Source: Cycas panzhihuaensis (taxonomy: Eukaryota; Plantae; Cycadophyta). From it: a stretch of 64,000 bases of DNA. This document shows positions 3,556-56,200 of the stretch, one piece after another; within the stretch, counting starts at the first letter, position 1; each line of letters starts with the position of its first letter. A program made the translations under genes and the position numbers. The stretch spans positions 50,909,741 through 50,973,740 of the forward strand of contig CM041465.1 of assembly GCA_023213395.1 (NCBI GenBank), given 5' to 3'. The notes under the pieces are model-generated. The model worked only from the letters and a program-made list of their open reading frames with translations. It ran no database searches and was not told where the DNA came from.

Positions 3556-3773
3556 AAGATTGAAGGGAAATTTATTATTTATTTATTAGAATCTTGATGT
3601 GTATTGACAAAAGAATAGGTCTTTGATGATAATTGAATGGATGTTAAACACCTTGATCTATTTTGATCACCTTAAAGATGTTGTAATTGTAAGAATTTAA
3701 AATTTCACTCTAATACCATATTTGAATGTATTCATTATATACAAATATTAAATATATATAATATATTATTTAT

Positions 3774-6700
3774 TATTAGAATATGGAGAATAGAGAAAAG
3801 TAGGTGAACATAGAAATTAAAGTAATATTCAAGTCATATTGAGAGTACACATTGTAAACATCATTGTATTAAGCCATCTTTGAAGAGAGTACATATAAAT
3901 TACTTTAAGAGGTGGTGTTGAAGAACACCAAATTTTACACCCCATAAAATATATACTTGGGAAAGAGGAGGGAATCCTCCTCAACCTCCAAAATTCAAAG
4001 TAATATAAAATAATAACTTAACATTAAAATAATAACAATGAATAATAAAATAATCTCACCTTAACTTACCATGAGGATGTGTGCACTCATATGTTCTTAA
4101 GGTGAGAGTTAAGTGAGGGACATTAACCCCAACATACTCCCCCTTAATATTCATCACTTATTCTTTAGTTTCTTTTTGAATTTGTGGTACAAGTACTTTA
4201 GGTATACTTTGACAAGGTGATTGTCCTCATGTCCTTTAGCTTCATCATCTTTGAAGTGGTTAATAATTTGCATCATTATCCTTTTCATATGATATTCAAT
4301 AAAATATGATTCAAGTGTAGATATAACTTACTTAAAATTAATAGAATTGTCTTTAACTTTGACTTTATACTTTTGAGGAGAGTTGATTAGGTCAAATATA
4401 TATGTAATCTCAAATGTAGCAATGTGATTATTAGTCTCAATTGAATCTTCAACATTATATGTAACATTAGATTTTTCATCAATAAACACCTGCTCTATCA
4501 TCTATCTCACAAAGAACACATCATCAATATAGTCAAATTTATTTAAATCTAAAATTTCCCCCCTATAAGGTAAGTATAGGGTATCCCAAACTAATTTTGA
4601 TATGGTTAAATCGCCAACACTAGTGAATACATCATTATTTAGTGTAGAAAAGATTAGAGCTAAGGCTTCATTATCTTTTTTCAAGTTTTCTCTAAAATTA
4701 AGTTCATTCTTAAGATAACCATCACTTACATAATGCTATTAATTATTTACAATGAGATGAGTTTTTAAAATGTACTTCTAAATGTAAAAGTTAGTCCTAT
4801 CAAATATGGAAAACCTTAAGTTATCTTTATTCGTTGTCATTGTAATCAATAAATTATAACTTCTAATAAGAAATCAATCTTGAAATAAGCAATAGAAAAG
4901 AGGTATAACTCCTTAAATAATGAGATAAATAATTGATAAATAATCTTTTAAATTAGATTCAATGAATGCTATTTGTAAAGTACTTTTCATAAGACTTCAA
5001 AATAGGTTAATGTGCCTTCAAATAATCAAATGCAACTTTGAAATAATTTTTAAAAAATAAACAAAACAGATCCTTTAATTTTAAAATCTTATTAAGAGTA
5101 AATAACCATCAAATGAGCCTTTCAAATCAAAGATAACATTCAAATAGTCATAAATGCATGCCTATTGAAAAATAATATAAACAACCTTTATTGAAATGAA
5201 ACTAAATAAGAAGATAATAATATGAGTTTTTAATATTCAAATGCAAAGCACTTAACTTTGAAATAATGATCAATATTCAACTTATAGTCTCTTAAAGTAA
5301 TGACAAATATATGAGGCTTTAAAGAGATGAACTATGAAGTATAAATGTAAATATAATGAAATGCTTAACATGAGATGAACTTCAAAAGCATAAAGAAGCC
5401 ACAAATGGCTTATGATTATGCACTAAAATACACTTATCAATCTTTAAAAATATAGTGGATTTAAGATAAATAAGAATGTTTTTTTAATTAGTGAACCAAC
5501 AACTTTAGATATATGGAATTTCTAGCAAAATTTCTTGAAACAATGTAGATGAAATAAAGAGATAATCTTTTATAAATTCATATGAAAACTAGGTGTAATC
5601 TTAAAGTTTTAAAGGTGATAAAAGACCTTAAATAGCCAAAAATACTAAAAGAAATCCTTTTAAATTCAAATATAAATATTAAAAAAAGAGAATAGTAATG
5701 GTAAGGAGCATTAATTATCATTTTAATCCAAATAGAGCTCTTGATCTTCAAGAAGCCAAAATTGATGCTAAAGAGCTAAAAAGAACTTATAAGCTTATAA
5801 AACCAAGTAAATATTATTGATAATTAATTAGCATATAGATAATAATCAAATATATTAAGTTAGAATAAGAGATTTGGCTTAAAATATCAAAGAATGTATC
5901 TAACTAAGATTGAAACAGAGCCTTAACTTCAATGGATTCAAAGACATGAAAAATAGTATCAAATCATGATAAAACCTAATTTAATATATAGATCATAAAA
6001 AATCTTTTTGACAAATCCAACCATTCAAAAAATAGGCTCCTAGATCAAAAGTTATGACTATTTTAAGAACTTTACTACTAAGATTTTTAAGGATTACAAT
6101 AGTACCTAGTGGTGAAATACTAATAATATTTTGCTCCTACCTTTGATTGACATCAAACCACTTCCATTGGATATAAAATTAAAAAATATACAAAATAAAA
6201 AGAAAAATGAGGTCATTTGGATACTAGTAGCTAATTTTATGGCTCTTTGAAGTTGAAGTTTCAAAATTATCCCAAAAATACGGTGACAGAAAAGTAGATC
6301 AAAATTAAATCTACTATAATTTTTATAACTTTTCACTAAAACTAGCACTATGACCATTTAAAAAAATAGTGAAAATGATTTAAATCATAAAAATATTAGT
6401 TGAGATACCAATATAATGGCTCTAAATTATTGTTAGGATGATTATGGCTATAAACTCTACACAAATCTAAGAAAATATAGATTATTTTGAGCATATATTG
6501 CTTGTTATGAGTGGTTTGATAGATCTCCTTTTAAAAACTTAATAGATCTTATTTTTATGCTAGATGAAGTTAAATGATAAAGCTTTGAATGTAGTATAAG
6601 ATCTAAAACATTAAATGAAACTAAGTAGGCCAAGATCAAGATGTTAATAATAAAAAATATTGCCAAGATTTTGCTTTGATACCATGTTAAAGTATGGTGA

Positions 6701-7047
6701 CTAGATTAGAGCAAGTGAACCCATAAATCAAAGTAAACATTTAATATATATTAAGAGTATACATTATAAACAACATTATATTAAGCCATCTTTGAAGAGA
6801 GTACATATAAATTCCTTTAAGAGATAGTGTTGAAGAACACCAGGGTTTTGCACCCCATAAAATATATACTTAGGAAGGAGGAGAGAATCCTCTTCAACGT
6901 CTAAAATTTAAACTAATATAAAATAATAACTTAATATTAAAATAATAATAATGCATAATAAAATAATATCACCTTAATTTACCATGAGGATGTGCACACT
7001 CATATGTCCTTAAGGTGGGAGTTAAGTGGGCAACATTAACCCCAACA
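3774..7047 (-). mobile_element. E3: gag-only (TR-GAG-like) copia-type LTR element inserted in the 3' LTR of E2
   Basis: LTRs 3774-4134 and 6685-7047; PBS 6673-6684 (GCTTTGATACCA); PPT 4135-4145; perfect TSD TTTAT. Confidence 0.92.
4135..4840 (-). pseudogene. gag: Short copia Gag-derived ORF of E3 (stops)
   Basis: Hand translation MTTNKDNLRFSIFDRTNFYI*KYILKTHLIVNN**HYVSDGY...KKDNEALALIFSTLNNDVF...SKLVWDTL matches the copia Gag N-terminus (DUF4219/UBN2-type). It ends KVYLKYLYHKFKKKLKNKVMNIKGE at the PPT. Confidence 0.8.
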
Positions 7048-8717
7048 TTTATATCATGAGGAATGTATATAATTCACATAATATAAGATCAATATATCAA
7101 GAAATAACTTGAGATATAATATATAGATATAAGAAGCATGTTAAAGTATCACCACAACAGAAAGTAAATTTATATGTAAAAAACCTAGTATGGAAAAAAC
7201 CATGGAGAAGGTTAAAGTTAAAGGCTTCTCTTTATGATCCTAAAATATTGCATCATCAATTTAATGATCTTTCTGAAGTTCTCAAGTGGTGTGTGTACAT
7301 ATCTATAGATATATCACCTCGTGAATATTTTATAATATTTCTTGAATTATTTTATCATTTAATAGGATGCTTATATGAATAATCATATATATTATATCTA
7401 TCAATAATTTTAGTTAATGAAATTTCATATGGGTCCACTACTTTATATTAAATATTAAATATATAAAAGTATCATATATTCCAATAATTCCCTTTAATAT
7501 TTAATGTCTTCAATTTACAATCTTCAAATCTTTAACCTTAATCTTCATACTTTCCCTATATATTAGAATCTATAAACCTATAATACATATCAAATTTGTA
7601 TCAAATTGAATTAAGTTATACCACTTATAACCTATAAATCTATAAGTTTATTAGTATTAAGCTTGTTTCTTATAAGTAATTAACATGTAATCTATTATCA
7701 AATCATTCTATAATCAATTGTGATAATCAGTGACCAACTATTAACATCCACTTATAAAATACCTATTAACCAATAATTAATAAACCAAATAATCAATCTT
7801 GAGTTCATGACCTTTACTTGTCATATTTACATGAAGTTTTATCCTCAATAACTTCATATTTTCACATGTAAAATTGTAATAAACATCCTATTATTAACTT
7901 ATCATCTTAAGAGTCTCATAAATAAAAATAATTACTAATATATATATAAAACAACAACCATCTACCGAAATACATAGGTAAACCAAGCATTGTAATCATT
8001 AGTTCTCTAGGAAGTATTTCTTATATGTGGTTCATTAACAAACAAGAGTATCAGGAATATCTAGTATCATAATGTATGTGTTGTATTATAGTAGCTTGTG
8101 AAACCTTTTCTTGTCTTTTATATAGAAGATAGCCTTGTATGATTTATTCATCTATTCATGCGTTAAAATCTTTCTTTTGGTAACTAATAAATAAAATATC
8201 AACATCAACAAATTAATAATTTGAATAAGCTAACTCTAAGAATAAGGCATACCACCTAGCCAAGTCAAGATAGCTATAATAAAGTAATATAAAGAGTATG
8301 TTCTTATGCCTCTTATCATACATGCAAGCTAGATTTCTCATTAACAAACACATATTTAATATCAATTGGACTTCTCAATAATTGATTTTGGTATACTAAG
8401 TAAACAATATATATGACTTCTTCTCTATATCTCATAAATATGTGGAAATTTCACTTAATCATCACATCAATATTCTAATAAATAAATTAGGCCCTTCATT
8501 AATATAAATCAAGTGGTGTTATCATCATCATTCATCAATAAATCAAGTGATCATGACATTTAATTAGTAAGTATAACTCTATTTATCAAATGTGTAAAAT
8601 ATGAAGGGGGATTTATATTATATACAACATATTTAAGATTCCCACATTAATAATATATCTCACAACATCAATTTTGAGCCTAAATTATTATAATTGAGCC
8701 TTAAATATCTTTATTTT

Positions 8718-8946
8718 TGTTGGAAATAATATTTGCAGGACTATGCTCTGATACCAAATATAGGAAGTAGAATATAGCTCTAAGTGCTCTGATACCAAAT
8801 GTAGGAAATAGAATGGAGCTAAACTGCTCTAATACCAAATGTTAGAAATAGAATGTAGCTAAACTACTCTGATACCAAATGTAGGAAATAGAATGTAGCT
8901 AAACTGCTCTGATACTAAATATAGGAAATAGAATGTAGTTAAACTG
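8718..8946 (-). repeat. Tandem ~40-bp 'U5 end + PBS' array inside the E4 3' LTR (5 PBS copies)
   Basis: GCTCTGATACCA-like copies start at 8745, 8786, 8826, 8866 and 8906, each followed by AA + TGTAGG/TGTTAG/TATAGG-AAATAGAATG-like sequence. Confidence 0.95.
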
Positions 8947-9357
8947 AGATATAATAAACTTTAATATATTCAAAATAACAGTATTGCATCAAATATTCAA
9001 TATAAATCTATGTAACAATGTAGCAATATAGATCGATATTGTACAAATGAACTATGAGAGCTTGATAGCATTATCTTCAATCCATTGTTGTTGAGAGCAT
9101 GACAAATATCCTCAAAGAAGGCGATGTCTAAAAGACACTAGGGTTGTACACCCCATAATATAAATAGTTTTGGGGAAGGAGGGAAACTCCTCAACCCTTG
9201 AATTTAAATTAATAATAAAATAATGTAACTTAACTCAAATAAACTAATTCAAATTAATATTAACTTACCTACATGTGTTTTAGCATCACATGTGTAAATT
9301 GAGGTGCACAATCCTGGTAGGTAAGAGGGAGTTGAGTGATGACATTATACTCCAATA

Positions 9358-10079
9358 TTCTCCCCCTTAATGTCATCATGAACACTTGTATCTTTTCCTT
9401 GAACTTATGGAACTTATACTTGAAAAAAACTTTGAAATTCTGATCTTGATCTTTATCAACTCTTCTCACCCTTATAGTCACATATGTCTCTTTATCATGG
9501 AATGATGTAGAAAAACTACAAGTAGATGAAACTTGATTCAAATATAAATGAATAGCTATAATTTTGATTTTGTCAACTGGAATATTAAGAAGGCTTTGAA
9601 CTTGAACTTTTGTAATCTTTATGCTTTGAACAACTGTCATATCATCAGGTTCATTCTTTGTCATATCATCAGATTCATTCTTTGTTATGTCGTAAGATTC
9701 ATCTTCATTCTCCCCCTCAAATGGAGGATCAAATCCTTGTGCAACAAGGTGGTCCTACATTTGATCTAAATCTTTATTGGTTTTGTCATCATGATCTACC
9801 TGTTATGTTACCTATCTCACATGCTCATCAAAAATTTCATCAAATACATGGAGGGTATCTCCCCCATAAGTAGAAATTAATACATTCTAAACTGATTTCA
9901 TCATTCATAGTACAAAATAATAAACCTAATGCTTCATTATCCTTTCGAATATATTCTTTAATGCTAACATCATAATCATGTTGCAAATATTTCCATAAAT
10001 CATGTTCAATAAAATAGTTTCTCATAGTGTTATGCCATTGTGCAAAATTTTGGCCATAAAAAATAGGGAATTGAGTCAT
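9358..10079 (-). pseudogene. gag: Short copia Gag-derived ORF of E4 (frameshifted)
   Basis: ORF track: MTQFPIFYGQNFAQWHNTMRNYFIEHDLWKYLQ...KDNEALGLLFCTMNDEI, then ...KVFFKYKFHKFKEKIQVFMMTLRGR. Contains a 24-bp tandem repeat at ~9637-9700. Confidence 0.8.
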
Positions 10080-11048
10080 TTTATTAAACAACTTTAATAT
10101 GTAGAATGAATATGCTTTAACAAGTTAAAATATCAACAAATTAATGAATATATATGATTTCAAATGCCCTTTAGAAAGTTAGTCAACTAGGCATAATAAG
10201 AAAATAATCTTTTTTTTTAAATGATAAAAGAACCTTTTAATATATGTACGCCTTTCAAATAAACTTTGAGATAAAGTGAATATAAGAGCATATATAAAGA
10301 TCTTTTGCCTTAATAATAATGTAAAATGCTAAAAATGAAATATATAAAAGTATTTTTCACTTTGAAAAAATAATAATATAAAGAAATTTTTAATAAAAAA
10401 TTAATATGCTTCTTAAAAGAAGGTTTGAATGATAACCTTAGGTATGAGGGATTCAAAAGTATATTAAATGATATCAGAATGATATAAAACTTTACGAGTA
10501 TAAAGATAAACAAAATGTGAACCCAACGGAATTGACCGTTCTGAAAATGGGTTCCTAGAAATCAAGTTGTAGTGAATCAAAGGTGTAGGCCTCGTTTTAA
10601 GGCTAAACAGGAGCAGGGGGTCAAAATGCTAACAAAATACTTATAGAATACTATAAGGTAATCAAATACTATTTATAAAATTGTTCAATGTACTTTTAAT
10701 TAAAAAGTTTTTAAAAAATATATTAAAAAATGTGTAAAAATATTAGATTTGAGGCAATAAAGTACCTCTACTTTGAATGATTTGAAAATCAGTAAAAATA
10801 TGTCAAAATGTATAAAAAATTATGTTAAATCAAAGAGAATTAAGTCAGATTCCCAACAAAACTAACGAAGTTAAAATCTGATACAAAATAAAAAAGTTAT
10901 AGCAAAAATGGTAACAGGTGTCTTTATATAAAATGTTAAGAAATAGGCTAAAAACAACTAAATTCCTACTTTTAGTGATTAAAATACTAATGAAAATGAA
11001 TTCAAAAAATTAAAATAAGAAGTGGGTATTGAAGCTTATAGAACGTAG

Positions 11049-12230
11049 CTGGAAGATGTTTGGAAGCTCCCCCTTATTCTGAAAATAGCTATTTTCTGGT
11101 GGACATGTTTCATGAATAAAATTCTCACTGTAGATAACCTTTAAAAGCGAGGCTTCATGTTGGCTAACAGATGTGTGCTATGCTGTAAAGGGGAGGAATC
11201 CATTGATCACATCATCCTTGAGTGTCCTTTCACAAAGGAAGTTTGGAAGTTGTTGCTTAGAAAACTAGAAGTATACTAGACTTTCTCGCAAAGGACAGCT
11301 ATCCTCTAGCTTACTTGGCAAAGCCCATTCAAAAGTAATACTCTCAGCCACATCTGGGAGAATACGCTCCTGATTCTGGCATGGAATATCTGGAAAGAAA
11401 GGAACAACATGATTTTCTAGGGAAAAGAGAAAGACCAGATGGCCGTCTATCTCAAAATCTGTTCAGACATCAGAGAAAACGTTGGAAAAGCTAAAGAAAA
11501 ATGCATATCCCTGGCAGAAAGTAGGATTTTGCTCAAATGGGGCATAGAACATGAATTTGAGGTTTCTAAGCCCAGAAGTACTAGATGGATCCCTCCAGTC
11601 AAGCCCTGGATCAAAATTAATTTTGACAAGGCAGCGAAAGGGAACCCTGGAGAAGCTGGGGGAGGGGGAATCTGTAGGGATAGCAAAGGCTCTCCCATTT
11701 AGGCCTTTGCGAATTATTATGAGAACCAAACTAACAACTACGTGGAAATGCATGCTATGCTTAAAGCCCTCGACCTAGCCTACATAGGGGGCTCTCAGGG
11801 GCTGGTGATTGAGGGAGATTCTGAGGTTGTCTTAAACTCGCTAAAAGGTGAGGCCCTTTCGGACTAGAGGTTTCAAGCCATAATCAAAGATGCCAAAGAG
11901 ATCATTAAAGGAATGTCGGATGTCTGCATAAGACACACCTTGAGAGAAGGCAATAAAGTAGTAGACTTTTTGGTAAATTGGGGGGTGAGGAACAAGAGGA
12001 GTCAAGTGTGGAGATATGATTTTCCTAGGGACCTTTTGGCTGTGGTTGACAAGGATATGATATGTAGGAGCTAGCCGCGGGACTTGTCCCGGCATTCTAG
12101 TCCTCTCACCTAAACCATGGGGTTGTCACGGTTAACTTTAGATTGGCATCTGATTTGCTTTTTGATGTACTAGGTTGTGGGATCCTGATTTCAAACCCAC
12201 TCTAATTCATTTTATCTTACAAAAAAAAAA
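11049..12230 (+). mobile_element. 5'-truncated L1-clade LINE with zf-RVT and RNase H, inserted in the E4 leader
   Basis: Motifs NKILTVDNL*KRG...RCVLCCKGEESIDHIILECPFTKEVW (zf-RVT) and WIKINFDKAAKGNPGEAGGGGICRD, IEGDS, REGNKVVD (LINE RNase H). Poly(A) at 12221-12230. 16-bp TSD AGCTTATAGAACGTAG / GGTTTGTAGAACGTAG (13/16). Confidence 0.93.
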
Positions 12231-12859
12231 GGTTTGTAGAACGTAGATCGCTATAGAAGAAATCTAAGTAGAAAACAATTTACCAGTAATAAATTACGAT
12301 CGGTTCTAAAAGTGATTTTGTTAAAAGTGTGAAAAAGGCTAAAAATTTGAATATCTAACATTAAATTGGTCGAAATAGGGTCAAATCTACACCAAATTGG
12401 TCATATGACCAGTCAAAATTGGTGTATAGAAAATTTCTAATCTAATGGAGATGGTTTAGTTAGAAACTAATGCTTTAGTGAAGAGTTATGGTAAAAAATT
12501 ACCAATAACCTTATAAAAAATAAAAAATAAATAAAAATGAAAAGTTTTATAATAGATGAAATAACCCTTTTGAGATGGCAAATGGTCACATGATGACAAG
12601 ATAAGACCGGGGGGATAGCAGTCAAGAGTGCTAAACTCTTTAAACACCCAGATTTTAAAAATTTATATAATTAAATTTATTTATTATTATTATTATTTTT
12701 TAAACTTAAAATCTATATAAAAAAGGGAAATGAAAATGGCTGCCGCCATAATTGCAGATGGACGGGGACCTGAACTATAAGAAAATAATTTAAAATAATA
12801 AATTTGGTGCCAGAGTTGGGCGTACTTAAAAATTTATATATATGCAAAAATATAAATAA

Positions 12860-13180
12860 GAGAAGTTGTTACATGCACCTAGCTGTTATTAACTGCACAG
12901 ACGCATGTGCCGTGAAGAGTACGCTACACGCAAAGCTGTTACGTGCACCTAGCTATTAAAATAAGAAAAAGCTATTAAAATAAGAAAAAGTTGCATAAAT
13001 ATCAATGTGCCTAGTTGCGAGTTGAAGCCACACGTAGGTGAGTAGAGGCGTGTGCCAGCCACCATTATGAGCAGAATGCATGCCACCACCATTATGAGCA
13101 GATTCCCAATGCAAAAGTGCTAGCGTAGAACGTATGCCACCGTTATGAGCAGATTCCCAACGTAAAAGTACTAGATGCAC
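12860..13180 (+). repeat. Local direct repeats in a CpG-retaining segment of the E4 leader
   Basis: AGYTGTTACRTGCACCTAGCT x2 (~12864, ~12934); AGCTATTAAAATAAGAAAA x2; CCACCRTTATGAGCAGA x3 (13059, 13085, 13137). Confidence 0.85.
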
Positions 13181-13546
13181 GTCACACGGATTAACCTAAT
13201 GGAGAATGGCTGAGGAACGACTGAGACTCAGGAGCATAGATCAAACGGCTGAGAGAGTAAGCAATGCAGCAAACTCCTGACCTTTTCCAGGAACCAGCGA
13301 GGGCAGAGATTTCAAGGAGCTAAGAGTTCTGATCGCGACTCCAAAGATCTAAGTGTATTATCTTCTTATGAGTCGAAAGTAGATAATCTGTCTCAGGAGG
13401 TTATAGAAGACGAGAGAAGTGGCAGCAGAATGAGAGAAATGCAAGACACAATATCAAACTTGTAGGAAGAGAAAGCGAGGGTTTTGATTCAGTTGTCGGT
13501 AGAGAGTCTTCAGACAAAGCATTTACAGGATGAAATCAACAATTTG

Positions 13547-13633
13547 AAGGAAGGTATGCAGACCAGTGTGGAAGCTATTCTTCTGGTACAAGAGCACAAC
13601 CACTCGCATATATTGCTATTGCAAATAAGAAAT
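13547..13633 (+). pseudogene. CFIm25: Captured fragment of pre-mRNA cleavage factor Im 25 kDa subunit (CFIm25/NUDT21)
   Basis: [29 protein letters not shown] matches the plant CFIm25 motif [29 protein letters not shown] as recalled from memory. Most differences are single transitions (R>Q, P>S, G>R). Confidence 0.88.
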
Positions 13634-14739
13634 GCCAAAAGTAGTTTTCTGAATCGTGGGTCTTAAAATGTATATATTTAGAAATGGTAAATAAAGTTAT
13701 TTCAGCTACCAACCAAGTAGCTCATGCAATAAGGATGGCTGTAGTGAAAGATATTCAGAGACAAATGGATGGCAACGTGCCTATTCTAGAGGTATAAGTG
13801 GTCAGGTTTATGTAAAATATTACAGTCAACAGAAAATTGATAAGCTTCAAAATACGCTCTTATAGTTTGGCATCACTGCATATAAACTATTCTATGCTCT
13901 TTGAGCTTCACACACTCAGCAACCACACCAAATATTTATGGTGGTTTCTTTATTATGTAACTTTCCTATTTGTGACAGGGGCCTCATAAATGCATGAAAT
14001 AGTGCTGAAGTAGTCTTTGTTAAGGGATTTAAAGCTCTGTTTTACAAGTTAAATAAGGTTGAATAAGGTTGGGCAAGGAGAATGTGATCCAACCAATGTG
14101 ATCCAACTAGCGGTGAGAAGAGGGCTTAATGTTTTGAAGTGTTGTAGTAGAGCCAAATCAATGAGGTGTGTTGGATATAGGTGGTAAATCTATCAGGAGA
14201 CTTCAATGTAACTCTAGCTTTAGCTCCACTAGGAGGCTTATTATGTATAAAAATAATAATGAAGGAATAATAATTAATAGAATATTTCAAAGAAAAATAT
14301 ATATTTGTACAATACAAATACAGATCTATAAATCTCTTATGATTTTGTTATGTAACTAATTAAATATTGGCTTACATATGATTATGTCTCGTACATGCTA
14401 CCTTGCTATTATAGCAAATATAGAAAAGTAATCAATGGAGAGGTTCTCAAGCAAAGTTGTGGAATCTGAACCCTTATGTAAGTGCCTTCCAAATTCCTTA
14501 GGGCCTTTAAAAAATCTATGAAGAAAATATGTCAAATAAATAACTTACACATATACTTGTATCTAAAATATTGTCAAATGTGTTGCAGCAAATATTTATA
14601 TCAAAGAACCAAGATATATGTATTTAGATCTAAAAAATGAAGTAAGAACCTGGAAATAAAGTTGTAGTTGGCTTTGTAGCTGAAAATAAGCTTCAAAAGG
14701 TTCCAGTAGACAAATCTTCTTCCTAACAAGTCAAATATA

Positions 14740-15130
14740 GGCAGATCTACTGTTACAAATGATTTGGTGGGTAGAATATGCACCCAAAAGCTGCAAGTCT
14801 ATAAAAAACTTAAAAATATAGTCAAAAGTATAATGAAAAATATAGATCTGAAATGAAATACAACAGATCTGAACTAAATATAGTAGAAAATGCTGAAAAA
14901 ACTTGATAAAATAAGCAGATCTTAAGCTAAATAATGTAGATCTGATGTGAGTATAGCAGATCTATAGACAAATAAATATAGATTTGAACAAATATACTAG
15001 AGAATAGTGAAAAACTTGCTGAAATAAGCAGATCTATAGACTATGTAGCAGATCTGAAGTGAAATGTAGTAGATCTTGAAGAAAACTTGTATGAGTCTTG
15101 CTTGCAGCTGAAAAACTTCACAGATCTGAG
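14740..15130. repeat. Dispersed (GC)AGATCT palindrome repeats in the E4 5' leader
   Basis: About ten AGATCT hexamers, often as AGCAGATCT, within ~390 bp. Confidence 0.85.
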
Positions 15131-15525
15131 AAAATATTCAATAAGTAGACAAAAAATGCCAAGAAATAATGAACTATATGGTAAAATATATAAATATGAA
15201 GAAAGATAGCTCAAATATGAGAAAAAAACTTGAGTAAATATAACTTGCTGTTGATCTCCTTCACAAATCTTTGAAAAAGTATAGCTTGTAGCTGAATTCC
15301 TTCATAAATCTGCACAAATCTGTGAAAAAACTGAAAAAGCACTTGTTATATCACAAAAAAAAACTCAATAATGAGTAAATCTTGATGAAAAATATATAAA
15401 AATTTGCTGCAAATTTTTCAGAAAGCAAATATAGCTAATATATCTTTCTTGTAAGAAAATTTACCGTAGAATGCCAGTAAATCATGTTGCTCTTCTTCAA
15501 AACTTTAGCAGGCCAGCAATCGTCT

Positions 15526-15893
15526 ACTCTGATACCAAATGTTGGAAAATAGAATGTAGTTCCAAGTGCTCTAATACCAAATGAAGGAAAATATGTAACT
15601 GAACTATGCTCTGATACTAAATATTGGAAAATATAGAATGTAGCTAAACTGCTCTGATACCAAATGTTGGAAATAATATTTGCAGGACTATACTCTGATA
15701 CCAAATGTAGGAAGTAGAATGTAGCTCCAAGTGCTTTGATACCAAATGTAGGAAATAGAATGGAGCTAAACTACTCTGATACCAAATGTTGGAAATAGAA
15801 TGTAGCTAAACTGCTCTAATACCAAATGTAGGAAATAGAATGTAGCTAAACTGCTCTGATACCAAATGTAGGAAATAGAATATAGCTAAACTG
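15526..15893 (-). repeat. Tandem 40-43-bp 'U5 end + PBS' array spanning the E4 5' LTR end and leader (9 PBS copies)
   Basis: PBS copies start at 15526, 15568, 15608 and 15651 (outside the LTR) and at 15692, 15733, 15773, 15813 and 15853 (inside the LTR). Confidence 0.95.
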
Positions 15894-17104
15894 AGATATA
15901 ATAAATTTTAATATATTCAAAATAATAGTATTGCATCAAATATTCAATACAAATCTATATAACAATGTAGCAATATAGATCGATGTTGAACAAATGAACT
16001 ATGAGAGCATGATAGCATTGTCTTCAATCCATTGTTATTGAGAGCATGACAAATATCCTCAAAGAAGGCGGTGTCTAAAAGACACCAAGGTTGTACACCC
16101 CATAATATAAATAATTTTGGGGGAGGAGGGAAACTCCTCAACCCCTGAATTCAAATTAATAATAAAATAATATAACTTAACTCAAATTAACATTAACTTA
16201 TCTTAACTTACCTACATGTGTTTTAGCATCACATGTGTAAATTAAGATGCACAATCCTGGTAGGTAAGAGGGAGTTGAGTGATGACATTACACTCCAATA
16301 ATTTTAAATGAAACTCAATTTTTTTTTTCATCAATATCACCATCATGATCTTTACAGCCTTTAAAAACATTAGAAAATTCTAAAAATCTCTGTCATTTTA
16401 TCTTTAAAATATGTCTTGCAATCACTCATTTTGACTATCTTAAAATTCTCTTTTCAACACAACTAATTGTTAATGTGTCATAAAAAATCATGTAGTCCTT
16501 AAGAAAATGAGTTTAGCTCCTTTTAGTGGGGCTCTTGGCCATACTAGCTTCTTCACATGACCGATTATTGATGCCTTGAGGGCTTACCGATGAACTTCAT
16601 AAAAGATTAAAATTTGATTAAATATATCAAAATATCATGTTTGCTTAATAACACACACCTCTTTATTTTGCTACATATCTACTAGTACAAACCTACTCCT
16701 ACCTATTTTATATAAATCATTCATTGATAGAATGAGTTCTCATATCATGCAACATGCCTTTAACTAAGTGCATTTACTGCTACTAATTATGAGATTATAT
16801 AAGATGGTTGGTGTGAAGAAATATAAAAATGTGTATGTATTATGAATTATTGGATCTTACTCATACATAACAAGTAATAATAAAGAATACAAGTACACAA
16901 GACGTAAGATTTATATGGCAAACTATTTCAAGAAAAAAAACCATATAAGAAAATTAGTCGATTATATTTTTTTAAATCTTGATTTATACATGCTCCTTGA
17001 TATGGGTTGACTCATATTATAAATGCCACCTAAGGATTTATATAAAACCCTAAATGGCACATTAACCAATGGTTATAACTCTTGGTATTTATAACTTTTA
17101 GCTT

Positions 17105-26401: not shown

Positions 26402-28869
26402 GGGCTTTATATCATCTATATATGATTTCAATCAACTTTATTTTGCCCCATAATCTTGGCCACATATCACTATTACATTTAGGTTTTGACTCATCAAATT
26501 CCTTCTCAAATTGGTTCATGTATTAGCTCATACTAACTATTTTATTAGCTTAATTAGTGGCTCAATTGGCTCATGCATAGGCTTTAATCTGCGTCATAAG
26601 ATCTTTCATAATATATATTTGATACCATGTAATAATTTAGAATTTTACTCTGATACCATATTTGAATGTACTTATGATGCATAGTGAAAGTATATAAAAC
26701 ATATATAATATATCAATTATATCATAAGGAATGTATATAATTTATGTAATATAAGATCCATATATCAAGCAATAATATAAAATATAAAGTATAAACATAA
26801 GAAATATGATAAAGTATCACCATAAGAGAAAATATATTTATACATGAAAAACTTGATGTGAAAATATTTATGGGAAAAGGTTGGAGTTGGGAGCTCCTTT
26901 TTATGATCTTTAAATACTATATCTCCAAGTTAATCCTTCTTCTCTCAAATTCTCAAGTGGTGTGTATACATATTTATAGATATATCACCTCATAAATAAC
27001 CTATAATATTTGTTGAATTGTCTTATAATGCAATATGATACTTAGATGGATAATCATATATATCACATTTATCAATGCTTTTTGTGAGTGGGATTTTATA
27101 TGGGTCTAATACTTTATATTAAATATTAAATATGTAAAAATATCATATATTATAATATTAATAGAATATATTAGTATTAATAATGGTTGCCCATAAGTCA
27201 TAAAACCCAAGGTAGTACAATTTATTATTAAATTATAAGATTCTTTTGAGAACTTTATAGGATAAGAGATGGAAAAGTAAACTCCTTATGAATTCATTAA
27301 ATTATAGTAGTTTTATAAATGTTACTACTATAGTGGAATTGATGATATGATGATTTTATAGTACATGTATATAGTTAGATAAATAGACCAAGTTGTTATT
27401 TGAAAGTTTTTTATAAACCATGCACATGAAATACTTCCTTATAAATTAACAATTGTAGAGGTTGACTACCCATGCATTTCGATAGATAGTTATAATTTTA
27501 TTTAGATGTTAATATATTAGTATATTAGTGAAGTGTATTTATAAGTATTTTGTAATTTTTCTAATGATCTTTACTTATATGAAGTAGAGTAAATTTATAA
27601 GTATTTTATAATTTTAAGTGATGACATTTGTTGCATAAAATATAAAGATAAGTAATGACTTGAAGACTTATCTAGGAGCCAAAGATAATGATATACCTGC
27701 TTATTTAAAGACTTTCTAGTAGTAAGTATATGAAGATGATGATGAAATTTTATGACATTTTTTTCCCCCCTATAGTTAACATTAAAGGGGAGTGTTAGAA
27801 ATGTAGTGTTGTCTAGTGGTTACAATATGATAAAATCATTAGATAATACTCTCACATATTTATGAATATTTAAGTACTGTTAAATGCTACGTAAATGCTC
27901 ATTTAAATTATTACAAAGTTATTATAAGACTTAAAAGTTCTCATACATTATCTTATTAGTGGATATTTGGTGAAACATCATTGGTCTTTAATGAGGTTAC
28001 CTATTTAAATAAAAGGGAAAGACTTACTTATGGATAGTTATGTAGATACCTACTTCTTCTAGGTGGAGACTAGTGTATTTACATCATCAAGATTATTGTG
28101 TACATCATTTAATATTAATGAGATCCTATATATATTATAAAGTAGTTTTCCCTCTAATACGTTTTTCACAATAAATCTTGTGTCTCAATATTGATTAATT
28201 GATTCATATTATATTGTTATGTATTGATGATTTTTATATCAATAATTTGTCCTATCCATGATCCTATAATACCTCCATTTCTTAAAATTTGATTAGGTTC
28301 AGTCAAGTTTTTTAAACACAATGATAATGATAATTATTAGCATGTTTAATTTTTCTAACATGTCATTTTCCATCTAATTTAATAGCTATTCAATAATATA
28401 ATTAGCTTTGCTTCCATATGAGCATGATAAATAACATATGGTTTTTATTATTCAAGTATATACCTTTAAAAAGTATTTTTTTAGAGGAGATGTGCAAAAT
28501 ATTATAAGTAATTTAAATGTGATAATATACCTAATAGCCCTTGAGAGTACAAAAAACTATAAGCTATAACATAATAGTTTGTGATTTGATTTATGGTGCA
28601 TAACTTTGAGTATTAGCTATGCTTAACTAAGATAGTAGTATGTTGTATGTTTTCTAAATTGACCTTGTGACCTTTGAGTTTTAGTTATGAAACTAAGCAT
28701 GTATTCTTTTCGAGGGTTTTACTTAATGGATGAATAACTATAGAATATAACAAATTAGCATAAAGCCTACTACCTAAATTATTTATGCTTTCTTGATCTA
28801 ATCCTCTATATTTGGAAGGATGATTTATCCAAGTATACAACTTTTTAGGGGAGTGCACTTGATGGATAA

Positions 28870-43540: not shown

Positions 43541-46500
43541 CTTTGTGATGGGAATTAAGATTTTATGAAGTAACTTGATTGATGTAGAGATGGGAAGAAA
43601 TATGTTTCGAGGCACATGATTAGACAATGCATAAACTTAGATAACAAAGCCATCCAATTAACCTCAAGATCGTTTTGGTTGAAACTTTTCAAAAGGATCA
43701 TGAAGTCAACATGTAAGACTAAGGAACATATTCTAATTAATATGACATTACTAAAAAGTCAAGAAATGGTGTGTATAAAATAGAGTTATAAACCTAATCT
43801 CCTTATTGTAGATGTAGGCATAAGAAAACTACATTTAATAAAAAATAAAATATTTTTCTTGAGGTACGAAGTTGGGTATAAGGTCAAGTACAAAAATTAT
43901 AACTAAGCACTCTCACCTATTTTTATAACCCCTTAGTGGTGCATCCTAACAATTTAGCACACCTTGGCATGATAAGTAAAATGCTTAGACCATTGGCATA
44001 CAAATGGACAAATGGTTGAATGTTATTGGTGCATTTCTTGTAAGTTAGTGACAAACAACTAAGGCCAAACTTATGGTAGATAATGATAAATGACCATGAG
44101 ACATGAGGTATTCCATCATATGTTGATATATATAATAAGAAGGAATTAAGCATAATACAAATTAGTATATGATGGATTATGTGTTATGCAAGTGTTAATT
44201 ACACAAGATAAATAATGTCATTGGAATAATTTAGAGGCAAATGTTTATAAGTGAGGGTCATATAATTCCAAGCGTATAAGCTTTTGCTTGGTTAAAAGGG
44301 TATTTTCATCCTATGTTTAGTGTGATGATTGAGTGATAGAAACTATTGTATGTATTCTTATGATAATGTAATACTGAGCATATGCCATGTGCTATGTATT
44401 ATTATTATTCTTGTGATTTCCATTATGATGAATTAAGAAGTATTATGTGATAGTCCAAAGTATGTTATCTTAATTAGGATAACCATGTGGAGTCACTACA
44501 TTGTTAAAAAATAAGATCACTAGATAAAACCTTAGCCACAAAAATGGCACCCTCATTCAAAATGATAAAGGTTATAAGGCACTAAGAAATTTAATAAGCC
44601 ACAAACATGATTACCATAGAAGGGCTAGGCAAACACTAAGGTTGAAGATCTAAAATAAGCAACATATATAGACCTCATGACAATAACAAAAATAATGTAC
44701 TTAATCTTGTTTGTAACCTTTAAGCATCTACAACTAGCATATGTATACTCCCCTAACTATATTAATCAATCTATTGAACATTGTTTTATTATTAATATCA
44801 ATCCATCCATATATTCTTCTTAGCAATTATAGATCTAATCAATGCCCCTTTCTTTAATTCTTCCACATACATCCTTATTGTTGGGTCTATCATTAATGTT
44901 ACTCTATAACCAATGCATTTATGGGTTCATGACTATAAAACTCTATCACAATAGTCTATTTATATCATATATATATTTATCTAATATGCTAGTAATTCAT
45001 TTCTACTACTTCACACCATTAACACTACTAATTAACATTGCTAACATTTATGTATTACTACCAATAGTCCAAAACACTAGTATCATACAATGTGCATCAA
45101 GCACCATCTATTATAGCTTTTATTGTATTACGTCCTCTACCACCAAAGTAGATACATTCACAATGCCTTCATTCAAAGCCCGTAAACTATAACTTGCATT
45201 TTATATACTATTTTTGTTGTGGAATACCTTAACCAACTTAACTGCATCTTGATTTTATCATTCATATTTTTTTCACCTACTAGTCTATAATGGAAAAAAT
45301 AAAGAGAAAAAGGGAAGGGGAAATATCTAAGTCTAAACTTTAGGCTTTATATTTAATTTTATAAAACCTTATTAACCTTGGGCCAAGGTCATATAGAACT
45401 ACTTCTCTAAGTGTTTATCAACTCAAAAGGCCCCTTCATTACATCAAGATGTAGATTGATTAAACTTAACCAAGGCCATGGAGGTTTAAATTGAGTTCAA
45501 CTAAGAAGAGGATGAAATGATGATTATATGGGATGTAGAATTGGTAATTAAAGTATTAAAAAAATAAGAGAATGGATTTAAAAGAAAAAAAAGGTCATAG
45601 GATCTTATGCTCTTTTGAGCATCTTTAATCTATACAAAAATAGATGAATAAAAAATAAGGGAAGCTTGTTATTCGATAACTTAACAATGAGATAAAGACA
45701 TATGAACATAGAGTATGGATAGGCCACATAACCTAATAATGTTTAATTAATGATAAAGAAAAGGCACAAATTATCACATGGTATCTTGATGGTATTACTT
45801 GCAAGTGGTTATAATATTTGGAAAGAACTTAATACAAGACCCAATAACCTCCTTGGGGGAATTCATCACTCTCTCTTTGAAAAGGTTTAAAGGTGAGTTA
45901 TGTAAACTACAAAAAATAAGATCAATGGAAGAATGCAATTCCAACTTTATGAAACTATTATATATAGTTGATGACATCCTAATAAATGAACTACTTCAAA
46001 TGTAAATCAATGTCTAATTATAGAGATCCATCCATATCTCAAGATAACAAACTTAAAATACCTAAAAAAAGTTATGTACCTAGACAAACTCTAAATTAAA
46101 GGTACAATAACATTAAAAAGATAAATAAGGAGCATGCATGGTACCATGTGGTCAATATATAAGTATTAAAATTTTTGATATACCTTATGTGAAAGCTTTG
46201 ATATCATGTTAAAATTTATTACACATAATAACATATTGAAGTAGATATATATATAAAGTATTCATCAATATAAAATATAATAAATAATAATAATAATGTA
46301 TGCATGCAATAATATAGCTCAATAATCACATAAGAAAGATAACACATGAGACACTAGATTTATATGTGGAAAATCCTAGATAGTAAAAACCATGAGAGAA
46401 GGGCGAAGTATATCTCTTTTTATTAGATTATCTCATCTCATCTCAAATATTCAAATGATGTATGTACATATTTATAAGTTCATCACCTCACATATTAAAC

Positions 46501-47117: not shown

Positions 47118-50969
<3,852 letters not shown>

Positions 50970-53263: not shown

Positions 53264-56200
53264 TTATAGCAACTTCCATTCACATTTATAAGGGGGAAAC
53301 CTACATAGGCGAAGTTCATGCAGAAATAATCTATTTTCACTTTCATGGACTCATTTAAACCTATATGTTTCATGAAATAGGGATCCTTTATACTTAAAAT
53401 ATCCAAAAATGCACCAATCAAATTCTCACCATTATTTTTAATCTTTAATTATTATCTTGCCCCTGATATATGGTCACATCTCCTTACCATATCAAATTTT
53501 GAGTCATCATCAATATTTAATATTGACTCTATTATTGGCTCTCATAATATATATATGGATCATCCTTGAATGGCAAGATGTTTACCATGTATATATGCTC
53601 TTCTTTTCTTCTCTCTTTAATCTACTTCTTACTTCTATTACTTAACTTAGATCTATCATCTCACCAAGACCTTCACCTATGTTATGTACTTCACCTTAGT
53701 TCTCAACCGAGCCTTTAATACCATGCTAAATTTTTTATATGCCTTATACAAAGACTTTAATACCATGTTAAAATTTATTGCACATGATAATATATTGAAG
53801 TAGATAGATATATAAAACATTCATAAATATAAAATTGTAATGGATAATAATGAAATATAAACATTCATGAGATATTTATGATAAACATTCAAGCATAATA
53901 ATAAAATTTTTATATATAAATATAACATAATAATCACACAAAAAAGATAATATATGAGACACTATATTTATATATGAAAAATCCTAGATGGGAAAAACCA
54001 TGGGAGAAGAGTGAATCACAGAGTTCACCATTAGCTCATCTCATCTCCTCTCAAATATGTAAATGATATATGTATATATTTTTAAATTTATCACCTCATA
54101 TAACAACTAATCATTTCATATTAATACAAAAGCCAATCACATCATATGTGTGAGAAACCTTTCACGTTGATAAATGACTACTTTGGTACACTAATTAAAA
54201 TTTGTATTGATGTTGTAAAACTAAATATTCTAATAATAAGAAGTAACACTAAGGAAGCACATGGGAAATTTCATAGGGAAATCACTCTTATAAGGGAAGA
54301 GGGTCTAAGAAGAATTAGATCACTAATACTCAAATTATTAAAGGTAGAACAAACTGACTTGAGAAGAAAATGATTATGCTATTGGTGTAAGAAAATAGAG
54401 AGATGGGCATAAGTATGCATAAAAATAATTGTATACCATTAAACTAAGTTAGAAAATGAAAGGGATACATGTGTAATATTTGAAAAAGACATCCTAAAAT
54501 AAGACTTGTCTAGTTTAGATTGTAACACCCACCCCCATCTCCCTCCCCTCCTGAACATACAATTGCCCTTAAAAGAATCATTTTCAATCATGATCAAACA
54601 TACTAAAACTCCAATGTTATATTAAAAAGGAGCATGCTATAATACTCGTGGATCTAGGCAATATCTATAACTTTATAACATTATGCATTATTGAATATCT
54701 CAAGTTGATACCCACTAAGATTGTAAATTTTAAGTTTCAGAAGTGTGACATTAATAATGTAAGGTAGTTGGAGGAACCTTAACCTTAATGCAAGGAAGAT
54801 AATTTTAAAAGAGGTATAGATGTGGTGCTTTTATAATAAATGTTTAATAAAAATAAGCAACTTTCACATGAATTGATAAAGTTTGTTTATATATTTCAAT
54901 CATGAGGAGAGGATTGTGATACTTTAATTATTTAGCACTCAAAAAACATAAATTGTTTCATCTTGTTAGATGTAGAAATTATTAAGTATCACCCAAGAAT
55001 AATTCTAAAACTTTTCTATAAGTAATGACAAAAATGAAGAAATTCAAGACATCATAAATAAATAGATGAATATCCTTCAAGAATTATTCATAAAATTACT
55101 TCTTTAATAGGAAATGGAATATATAATCTAATTTTAGCATGGAATCAATTGAATAAATATACATTTGTATTAATTTTATTAATTATATAAGGGCCTGATC
55201 ATCTAATTTGAGTTTTTTCAATATCTTCTTAGAATTCATTGTCACAGAGTAATACGATATCCCTTTATTCAAGATTTGGAAACATCATATGGCAAATATT
55301 CTATGTTTTTCCTGGTTTCTTATCAACTAGATTGTCTACAATGTAAGTATTTCATTTTCATCTAGTTATACTGGCTTGTGTGTGGATGTGCATGTGTATG
55401 GAGGAATTTCTACTTTCTTAGTCAAATAAGGTATTTTAATGCATAAGTTGGACACATGCTACTTAAATGGAATGGTTGCCTCTAAACCACAAGTTTTAAA
55501 AAAAGGAGTTTATCTCATATATTTATTTGTAAATTGTTTAGAATGCCCACAAACTAAATACAACATTCTAGCCAATTAGAATGCCTAACATCACATATTG
55601 TTCTCAATGAATTCTTGAGTATTTTATTTAAACTCATAACTCAACAATCTACTTTTAGATAATAGGGAGCTAATTTACAATGAATAATCATGAATTTGAC
55701 TATAAGATTATGGGTTACATATGTCCATATTTCTTAATGCTTTTGCCTCTATCTACTTTATCACACCAAAATGTAGTGTGCATGAGATTGTCTCATTACT
55801 AACTTACTAGAGCTAACATAGCCTAGCCCACACCCCCCCTTCCCCTACCCCCTCCCTTTCTTAAATAGTACATAATAACAATGTGTGATTGAGAAGGGCA
55901 AAATTTCCGTTTGTTACCTTCCTTGTTCTTTAGTAATAATCTCATGGCTTGGCCCATTTTTCTATATATATGAATAACGTATACCACCATAATTATGCAT
56001 GTGATATCTTATCCATTGTGCCATCATTTGTGACATGTCCTACTCTTAGGCCTTAATGGGATTGGCTAAAGCTTTATACAATTTTATATTATGGCATGCA
56101 TCTCCTTACAATATTATTTGGTCTAATTTTATGCAATTCTCTATGAATTAGTTAATGCAAGTTGATTACTTTAAGCTAATTCTCTCACTCCACTTCATCC

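Follow-up and report, generated by a model that had tools for sequence, protein, structure and literature searches.

The window, that is, the whole stretch of 64,000 nucleotides of Cycas panzhihuaensis DNA that was analysed, carries on its minus strand an LTR retrotransposon (hereafter named E4), which is nested within an older element, E2. The parts of E4 are located as follows.

8718-16300, minus strand: whole E4 element, an LTR retrotransposon
15665..16300, minus strand: 5' LTR, 636 bp, delimited by LTR-LTR alignment; U5 tail 0 and five primer-site cassettes make up its final ~228 bp
8718..9357, minus strand: 3' LTR, 640 bp, holding the five cassettes of the 5' LTR in register with them
16301..16305, minus strand: target-site duplication AAAAT, 5' side
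8713..8717, minus strand: target-site duplication AAAAT, 3' side, adjoining the extended LTR end
9358..9368, minus strand: polypurine tract AAGGGGGAGAA, directly upstream of the 3' LTR
9358..15664, minus strand: internal region, 6.3 kb, without pol, with a decayed copia-type gag remnant at ~9843-10091

This organization is that of an LTR retrotransposon. Two direct LTRs with short inverted termini were found (93.6% identity in the alignment of the 5' and 3' copies), the sequence AAAAT (ATTTT on the plus strand) was present as a 5-bp duplication at both outer ends, the 12-mer TGGTATCAGAGC lay 2 nt past the end of the 5' LTR and the polypurine tract adjoined the 3' LTR. Both LTRs start with TATTGGAG (also given as TATTGGAGTG) and run to the end ATTTCCAACA. 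The outer end of the 5' LTR was placed at position 16300, a coordinate that was absent from the first-pass annotation of this DNA. The termini of both LTRs read TATTGG...CCAACA, and thus TA...CA, one base off the canonical TG...CA; the dinucleotide TA instead of TG is found at the LTR starts at 16291-16300 and 9348-9357. The inverted partner of TATTGG is CCAATA, the end used in E4 is CCAACA and most of the cassettes described below carry CCTACA.

No intact gag or pol sequences (protease, integrase, reverse transcriptase, RNase H) were detected in E4 with ORF lists and Pfam, and the ORFs on the element strand were all of 161 aa or less. The only coding trace was the gag remnant, which matched Pfam Retrotran_gag_2 with E = 7.9e-4 and 19.4 bits, under the curated cut-off of 27, so that E4 does not qualify as an autonomous Ty1/copia element. 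A protein search with this remnant gave no match. Complete ends and primer sites around a several-kb internal region that lacks pol are the features of LARD-type elements, and E4 has them. A target duplication of 5 bp is the usual length for Ty1/copia elements. Because of its initiator tRNA-Met (iMet) primer site, its 5-bp duplication and the presence of a gag remnant only, without pol, E4 is a non-autonomous LTR element of Ty1/copia descent. When the 64-kb window was compared with itself by BLAST, no second copy of E4 was found in it, only two distant relatives, E3 and E7, each of which has the LTR core in common with E4 and a single primer site. Two further tandem repeats are present in E4, one of 113 bp x 1.9 in the leader (14865-15076) and another of 24 bp x 2.8 in the gag remnant (9635-9702). 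No tRNA genes were detected in the window, and no Rfam families in positions 8000-17000.

The junction between U5 and the primer site is not single in E4. It is repeated in tandem, with the following components.

15526..15892, minus strand: 5' array of nine cassettes, each made of U5 tail, TT and a 12-nt iMet primer site
15853-64, 15813-24, 15773-84, 15733-44 and 15692-703, minus strand: primer sites 1-5 of the 5' array, inside the 5' LTR
15651..15662, minus strand: primer site 6, following CCAACA-TT at the end of the 5' LTR
15526..15650, minus strand: leader cassettes with primer sites 7-9 (15608-19, 15568-79 and 15526-37)
8718..8945, minus strand: 3' LTR array with U5 tail 0, cassettes 1-5 and the sixth tail (primer sites 8906-17, 8866-77, 8826-37, 8786-97 and 8745-56)

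With Tandem Repeats Finder, the 40-bp unit was counted 9.0 times at 15527-15893 and 5.1 times at 8744-8946. With one mismatch or none allowed, TGGTATCAGAGC had 19 matches in the window, where chance alone would give 0.14. Two minus-strand clusters account for 14 of them, with nine matches between 15526 and 15864 and the other five between 8745 and 8917. Conserved in plants, this 12-mer is the primer-binding site that pairs with the 3' end of the initiator tRNA-Met (PMC7215508). Read on the element strand, each unit of E4 contains the 12-mer or a one-transition variant of it, then a copy of the U5 tail of 26-31 nt that ends in ...TTTCC(T/A)ACA, and then TT, with a period of 40-43 bp. Each cassette is thus complete for both jobs of the junction, since it has the CA end that is recognised by integrase, a spacer of 2 nt and a 12-nt stretch complementary to the 3' end of the iMet tRNA. 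The first-pass annotation had described 40-43-bp units of this composition, nine primer sites at the 5' end and three spare copies downstream; the repeat analysis and the positions of the 12-mers bear out all three points, with nine sites located between 15526 and 15864 and sites 7-9 lying in the leader. Its suggestion that the variant units arose by block duplication was not borne out, because the variant tails follow one another in mirror order (A B C B' A'), which does not fit such an event. These tails begin with ACTTGG.. in cassette 5, ATAGTCC.. in cassette 6, AGTTT.. in cassette 7, ATAGTTC.. in cassette 8 and ACTTGG... in cassette 9. Unique leader sequence (AGACGATTGC...) comes directly after site 9, and CCTGC.AAA is common to this sequence and to the tail of cassette 6. 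By eye, the junction preceding the first tail matches the primer site at only 4/12 positions, and it was not accepted as a tenth, decayed site. The predicted RNA fold of the array was unremarkable (z = -1.9).

The alignment of the two LTRs allowed their limits to be placed with respect to the cassettes. Primer sites 1-5 and six U5 tails are inside both LTRs, where they correspond unit for unit and have their unit-specific variants in common. The 5' LTR stops at the CA of the sixth tail (15665), and is followed by TT, primer site 6 and three more cassettes. The 3' LTR stops at the same CA, and there the target duplication comes next. According to the standard model of reverse transcription, U5 comprises everything between R and the site primed by the tRNA, and it goes into the minus-strand strong-stop DNA and from there into both LTRs. 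The occurrence of cassettes 1-5 in both LTRs, with site 6 adjoining, therefore records priming at site 6. Taken together, the standard model and this structural record indicate that the last cycle of E4 would have been primed at site 6, which is neither the first nor the last of the nine. The minus-strand strong-stop DNA would then have carried U5 plus five cassettes, which would thereby have been redefined as U5. Since both LTRs end at the same cassette CA within one 5-bp duplication, it was the duplicated end that was integrated, and the sixth-tail end would have been the one processed by integrase; no other route was seen by which primer sites could come to lie in a 3' LTR with a matching duplication. 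The standard model also implies that the choice of site can differ between cycles, so that the boundary between LTR and leader would move within the array. In this respect the first-pass annotation had been accurate: it had placed five units inside both LTRs (8718-8946) with the target duplication abutting the extended end, as the alignment and the AAAAT positions show, and it had deduced priming at the sixth site and acceptance of the duplicated end by integrase, which agree, respectively, with the five shared sites next to site 6 and with the common CA end inside a single AAAAT duplication. The interpretation that we favour, and consider probable, is that E4 is a non-autonomous copia-type element whose U5/primer-site junction was multiplied to nine cassettes, five of which were moved into both LTRs by priming at site 6.

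The comparison of the LTRs also bears on whether the array was formed before or after the insertion. Between the two LTRs of E4, 35 transitions and 6 transversions were counted, giving K2P = 0.068, which corresponds to an insertion age of ~2.6 million years if a plant rate of 1.3e-8 per site per year is assumed. In the 229 columns of the alignment that belong to the array, 14 transitions, 0 transversions and 0 indels were counted, and therefore the number of units has not changed in either LTR since insertion. Between the leader cassettes 7-9 and their nearest counterparts in the LTRs, 2-7 transversions or indels are found in ~29 nt; these types of change are absent from the post-insertion record, and the leader cassettes must therefore have diverged earlier. 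The sequence thus shows that all nine cassettes were already in the RNA that gave rise to this copy of E4, because leader and LTR cassettes had split before insertion.

Conservation within the cassettes was analysed by counting transversions and indels only, as transitions may be the result of later decay. Over the nine E4 cassettes, a transversion or an indel was present in 0/126 cells of the 12-mer and TT spacer, in 5/72 cells of the final 8 nt of the tail and in 27/207 cells of the remaining, left part of the tail. The comparison of primer site and spacer with the left tail gave p = 1.5e-6 in Fisher's test, a value to be read with the fact that the cells are non-independent, the cassettes being related by descent. 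Where a pair of primer sites differs between the two LTRs, one copy always retains the exact 12-mer. The cassettes of E4 thus look functional, as the first-pass annotation had proposed, with primer site, spacer and CA conserved while the tails drift.

Similar junctions were found in two other elements of the window, E2 and E8.

26616..26658, minus strand: E2 5' LTR junction, with a primer site (26647-58) inside the LTR, the LTR end at 26628 and the next primer-site-like stretch at 26616-27
3707-3718: internal primer site of the E2 3' LTR counterpart, with the LTR end at 3688
53712..53765, minus strand: E8 5' LTR junction, with a primer site (53754-65) inside the LTR and an adjoining site at 53712-23
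46195-46206: internal primer site of the E8 3' LTR counterpart

The LTRs of E2 end in ...TTACA, and in the 5' copy this end is followed by the next primer-site-like stretch. The E2 LTR pair is ~81% identical, and E3 (3776-7052) lies inside the E2 3' LTR. The LTR start of E2, TATTGGAAT, resembles that of E4, TATTGGAGT; because of this likeness, the two elements may have shared a helper integrase. In E8, a 42-bp cassette made of a primer site and a new U5 end (...TTTAGCA) is present in both LTRs (53712-53765 and 46167-46206), and the primer sites have decayed through transitions. A 1.1-kb (AT)n microsatellite inside E8 (49674-50812) gives rise to spurious long ORFs.

In order to look for such arrays elsewhere, public metagenome contigs were scanned for three exact 12-mers spaced 20-40 nt, and 13 loci were obtained. 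Since exact 12-mers were demanded, the conservation of primer sites in these arrays reflects ascertainment and is not evidence. Four loci (L001, L004, L007 and L013) were set aside for their bacterial gene contexts according to Pfam, two (L003 and L010) because they were prokaryotic or coding by the look of their sequence and ORF content, and L002 because it has neither a CA end nor a clean unit edge. In L001:14-109, L004:2650-2745 and L007:4681-4776, which belong to bacterial contigs, the plant 12-mer is contained in a 21-bp tandem repeat, a chance look-alike; a glycosyltransferase and a GDP-mannose dehydratase are neighbours of the one in L001. As a control, the three-site pattern was searched in 596 Gb of prokaryotic genomes and in viral contigs, with no match. 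The exact E4 cassette pattern had no match in the metagenome contigs.

After this filtering, two complete young LTR elements were retained. In L006, the LTRs are 98% identical, two cassettes are inside both LTRs and a third site adjoins the LTR. L008 (2.9 kb) also has LTRs with 98% identity, with at least one internal site; seven exact 12-mers and one degenerate copy were counted. Two fragments, L005 and L009, have the same cassette form. All the examples with young LTRs seen here are devoid of pol. Three sites were present in each of the three copies of the L006 family that were sampled (L006, L011 and L012), a uniformity that speaks for stable inheritance over frequent change. In seven of eight arrays (E4, E2, E8, L006, L008, L005 and L009), the sequence that follows the last site shares only 0-3 nt with the sequence that follows the internal sites, and therefore the duplicated unit ends where the complementarity to the tRNA ends. 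For units of 30-43 bp in six families and random breakpoints, a rough hand estimate of the chance of such an edge is ~1e-4. In L006, L005 and L009, the match to the tRNA is longer by 1-2 nt in the internal copies than in the last one.

Three other explanations were weighed against priming at site 6 in a functional array. E4 might carry an ordinary minisatellite, in which host slippage or unequal exchange expanded 40 bp that spanned the U5/primer-site junction; the additional sites would then be functionless passengers, although the LTR boundary would still correspond to one priming event at site 6. Such an origin would be in line with the cranberry survey (bioRxiv 10.1101/2021.07.15.452536), according to which plant LTR retrotransposons often have short tandem repeats in their LTRs and in the untranslated regions beside them, with the arbitrary unit phase of any tandem array and with the array of L002, whose end is not at a primer-site edge. 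We nevertheless regard it as unlikely, given that the array remained free of indels over 229 columns while the LTRs diverged to K2P 0.068, that its primer sites and spacers are selectively conserved, being invariant for transversions and indels, and that the right edge of the unit falls within 0-3 nt of the end of tRNA complementarity in seven arrays, which would be expected about 1 in 10,000 times according to the rough hand estimate given above.

It might also be thought that the number of units was set by mis-registered first-strand transfer, with the array lying partly in R and the strong-stop DNA annealing out of register on the 3' R, so that the array would grow or shrink without alternative primer sites. 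An AT-rich stretch just upstream of the array, a possible poly(A) signal, is compatible with this idea, but transfer of this kind cannot place cassettes downstream of the LTR end, it leaves unexplained the position of the LTR end, at a cassette CA with TT and an intact primer site directly after it, and it still requires priming at site 6; we judge it to be very improbable. Least credible of all, and hardly to be entertained, is an error of assembly or of LTR delimitation, in which repeats were collapsed or expanded, or the 3' copy came from recombination and deletion. The two arrays are 6.9 kb apart and agree unit for unit, yet they carry private transitions; the element is bounded by identical 5-bp duplications, by the TATTGG/CCAACA inverted repeat and by a polypurine tract at the inner edge; and the same architecture was found in independently assembled contigs (L006 and L008).

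To our knowledge, the setting of LTR length by priming at multiple sites was previously known only from engineered vectors. In the two-primer-site retroviral vectors of Voronin and Pathak (2004), a second, downstream site on the same RNA is reportedly able to start minus-strand synthesis. As in those vectors, the stretch between R and the site used enters both LTRs in E4, and a structural record of this behaviour, with the stretch between sites copied into both LTRs, is likewise found in L006, E2 and E8. The vectors are man-made and have two sites, whereas E4 is natural, has nine sites, each coupled to a separate copy of the integrase end, and is a fixed genomic record. No published description of natural tandem arrays of LTR end plus primer site was found, which is weak evidence, as the search missed most subscription journals and curated repeat databases. 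The first-pass annotation had known of no description of such arrays; this stands for natural elements in the literature searched, but not for engineered ones, as the two-site vectors are a direct precedent.

The position of the primer site is also decisive in the LTR1 lentiviral vector, where its engineered placement determines which sequences are reverse-transcribed into the provirus (PMC5542766). HIV-1 isolates of the MAL type have a natural 23-nt insertion downstream of the primer site with a partial duplication of it (PMC3185550). Like the array of E4, this is a natural primer-site duplication in the leader of a retroelement, inherited by many isolates; unlike it, the duplication is partial and single, comes without a second U5 end and has stayed outside the LTR. 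A mirror case is provided by the Sireviruses, in which multiple polypurine tracts are present and the upstream copies lack a correct attachment site (PMC2829016). There, too, identical copies of a replication primer are clustered beside the LTR in Ty1/copia elements, but the upstream tracts stay outside the LTR, whereas each E4 cassette joins a primer site to an attachment end and five of the nine are within the LTRs. The repeats of the cranberry survey (bioRxiv 10.1101/2021.07.15.452536) resemble those of E4 in being tandem arrays of tens of bp in non-coding ends; they were not reported as modules of primer site and LTR end, and no tie to the choice of priming site was made. Cassandra TRIM elements (PMC7215508) share with E4 the same 12-nt TGGTATCAGAGC, their non-autonomous condition in plants and a repeated structure. 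Their arrays, however, consist of whole elements (LTR-internal-LTR-internal...) and are ascribed to recombination, whereas those of E4 are 40-bp junction cassettes within one element. In Ty3 and gypsy, bipartite or dual tRNA-binding sites occur, and the 3' site of gypsy is not used for cDNA synthesis (PMC1635307). These genomes have, as E4 does, more than one tRNA-binding site, but the sites are at opposite ends of the RNA and pair with different parts of the tRNA, and they are not tandem copies.

Regarding the origin of the cassettes, the sequence constrains the mechanism, because the unit ends where the pairing with the tRNA ends. The E4 tail begins with CAGTTT, similar to CAGGTT, which we take to be the tRNA-derived continuation beyond the iMet 12-mer; a continuation of the CAGGTT type is also present in the L009 cassettes. 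A possible mechanism, which we put forward tentatively, is that cassettes arise by switch-back and re-copying of plus-strand strong-stop DNA. This DNA would copy the end of the tRNA, then switch back to an upstream point in U5 and re-copy the tail and the tRNA. The event would at first lengthen the 5' LTR only; the added cassette would enter both LTRs in the following cycle, provided that priming took place at the new downstream site. Each time a site was used it would be re-templated from the tRNA, and this, selection, or both would keep all the copies intact. Such a mechanism would explain the unit edge at the end of tRNA complementarity and the intact primer-site copies. Other observations fit it poorly: the microhomology at the switch point is good in E4 (CAGTTT vs CAGGTT) and absent in L008 and E2, the most similar and youngest-looking cassettes of E4 (1-4) are far from the boundary last used, and the variant tails are in mirror order. 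Were R to extend into the array, first-strand transfer out of register would be a further way of altering the number of units. With somewhat greater reserve, the same steps may be extended to a general route of LTR growth, in which re-copying adds a cassette, downstream priming moves it into both LTRs and re-templating by the tRNA maintains the sites; this route would operate often in non-autonomous elements of plants, which would thereby acquire spare or competing sites for primer loading. A benefit to the element, through more primer loading or tolerance of primer-site mutations or of tRNA-fragment inhibitors, is conjectural. The same applies to two proposals of the first-pass annotation, a ratchet in which alternative priming and mis-registered strand transfer would lengthen U5, and an advantage of a non-autonomous element over its helper in the use of primer tRNA. 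If it is true that extra sites aid primer loading or resist inhibition by tRNA fragments, this would bear on the competition between parasite and helper.

Priming at site 6 would make E4 a natural, fixed record that an LTR retrotransposon can begin reverse transcription at any of several primer sites, with the choice setting the length of its LTR, and it offers a concrete route for the evolution of U5 and of LTR length. Arrays of the E4 type are, in addition, a ready-made system for studying how primer sites are chosen and kept intact. They are also a trap for annotation, as a primer site within an LTR, or an LTR end within an array, will be mis-called. A difference between the two ends of one element was seen in L008, where, in the 5' LTR/leader (8450-9207), the first internal cassette is separated from the next primer site by ~80 nt that are missing from the 3' LTR (5960-6720). 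This is either an asymmetry of the LTR ends, as would come from plus-strand re-copying, or a later rearrangement.
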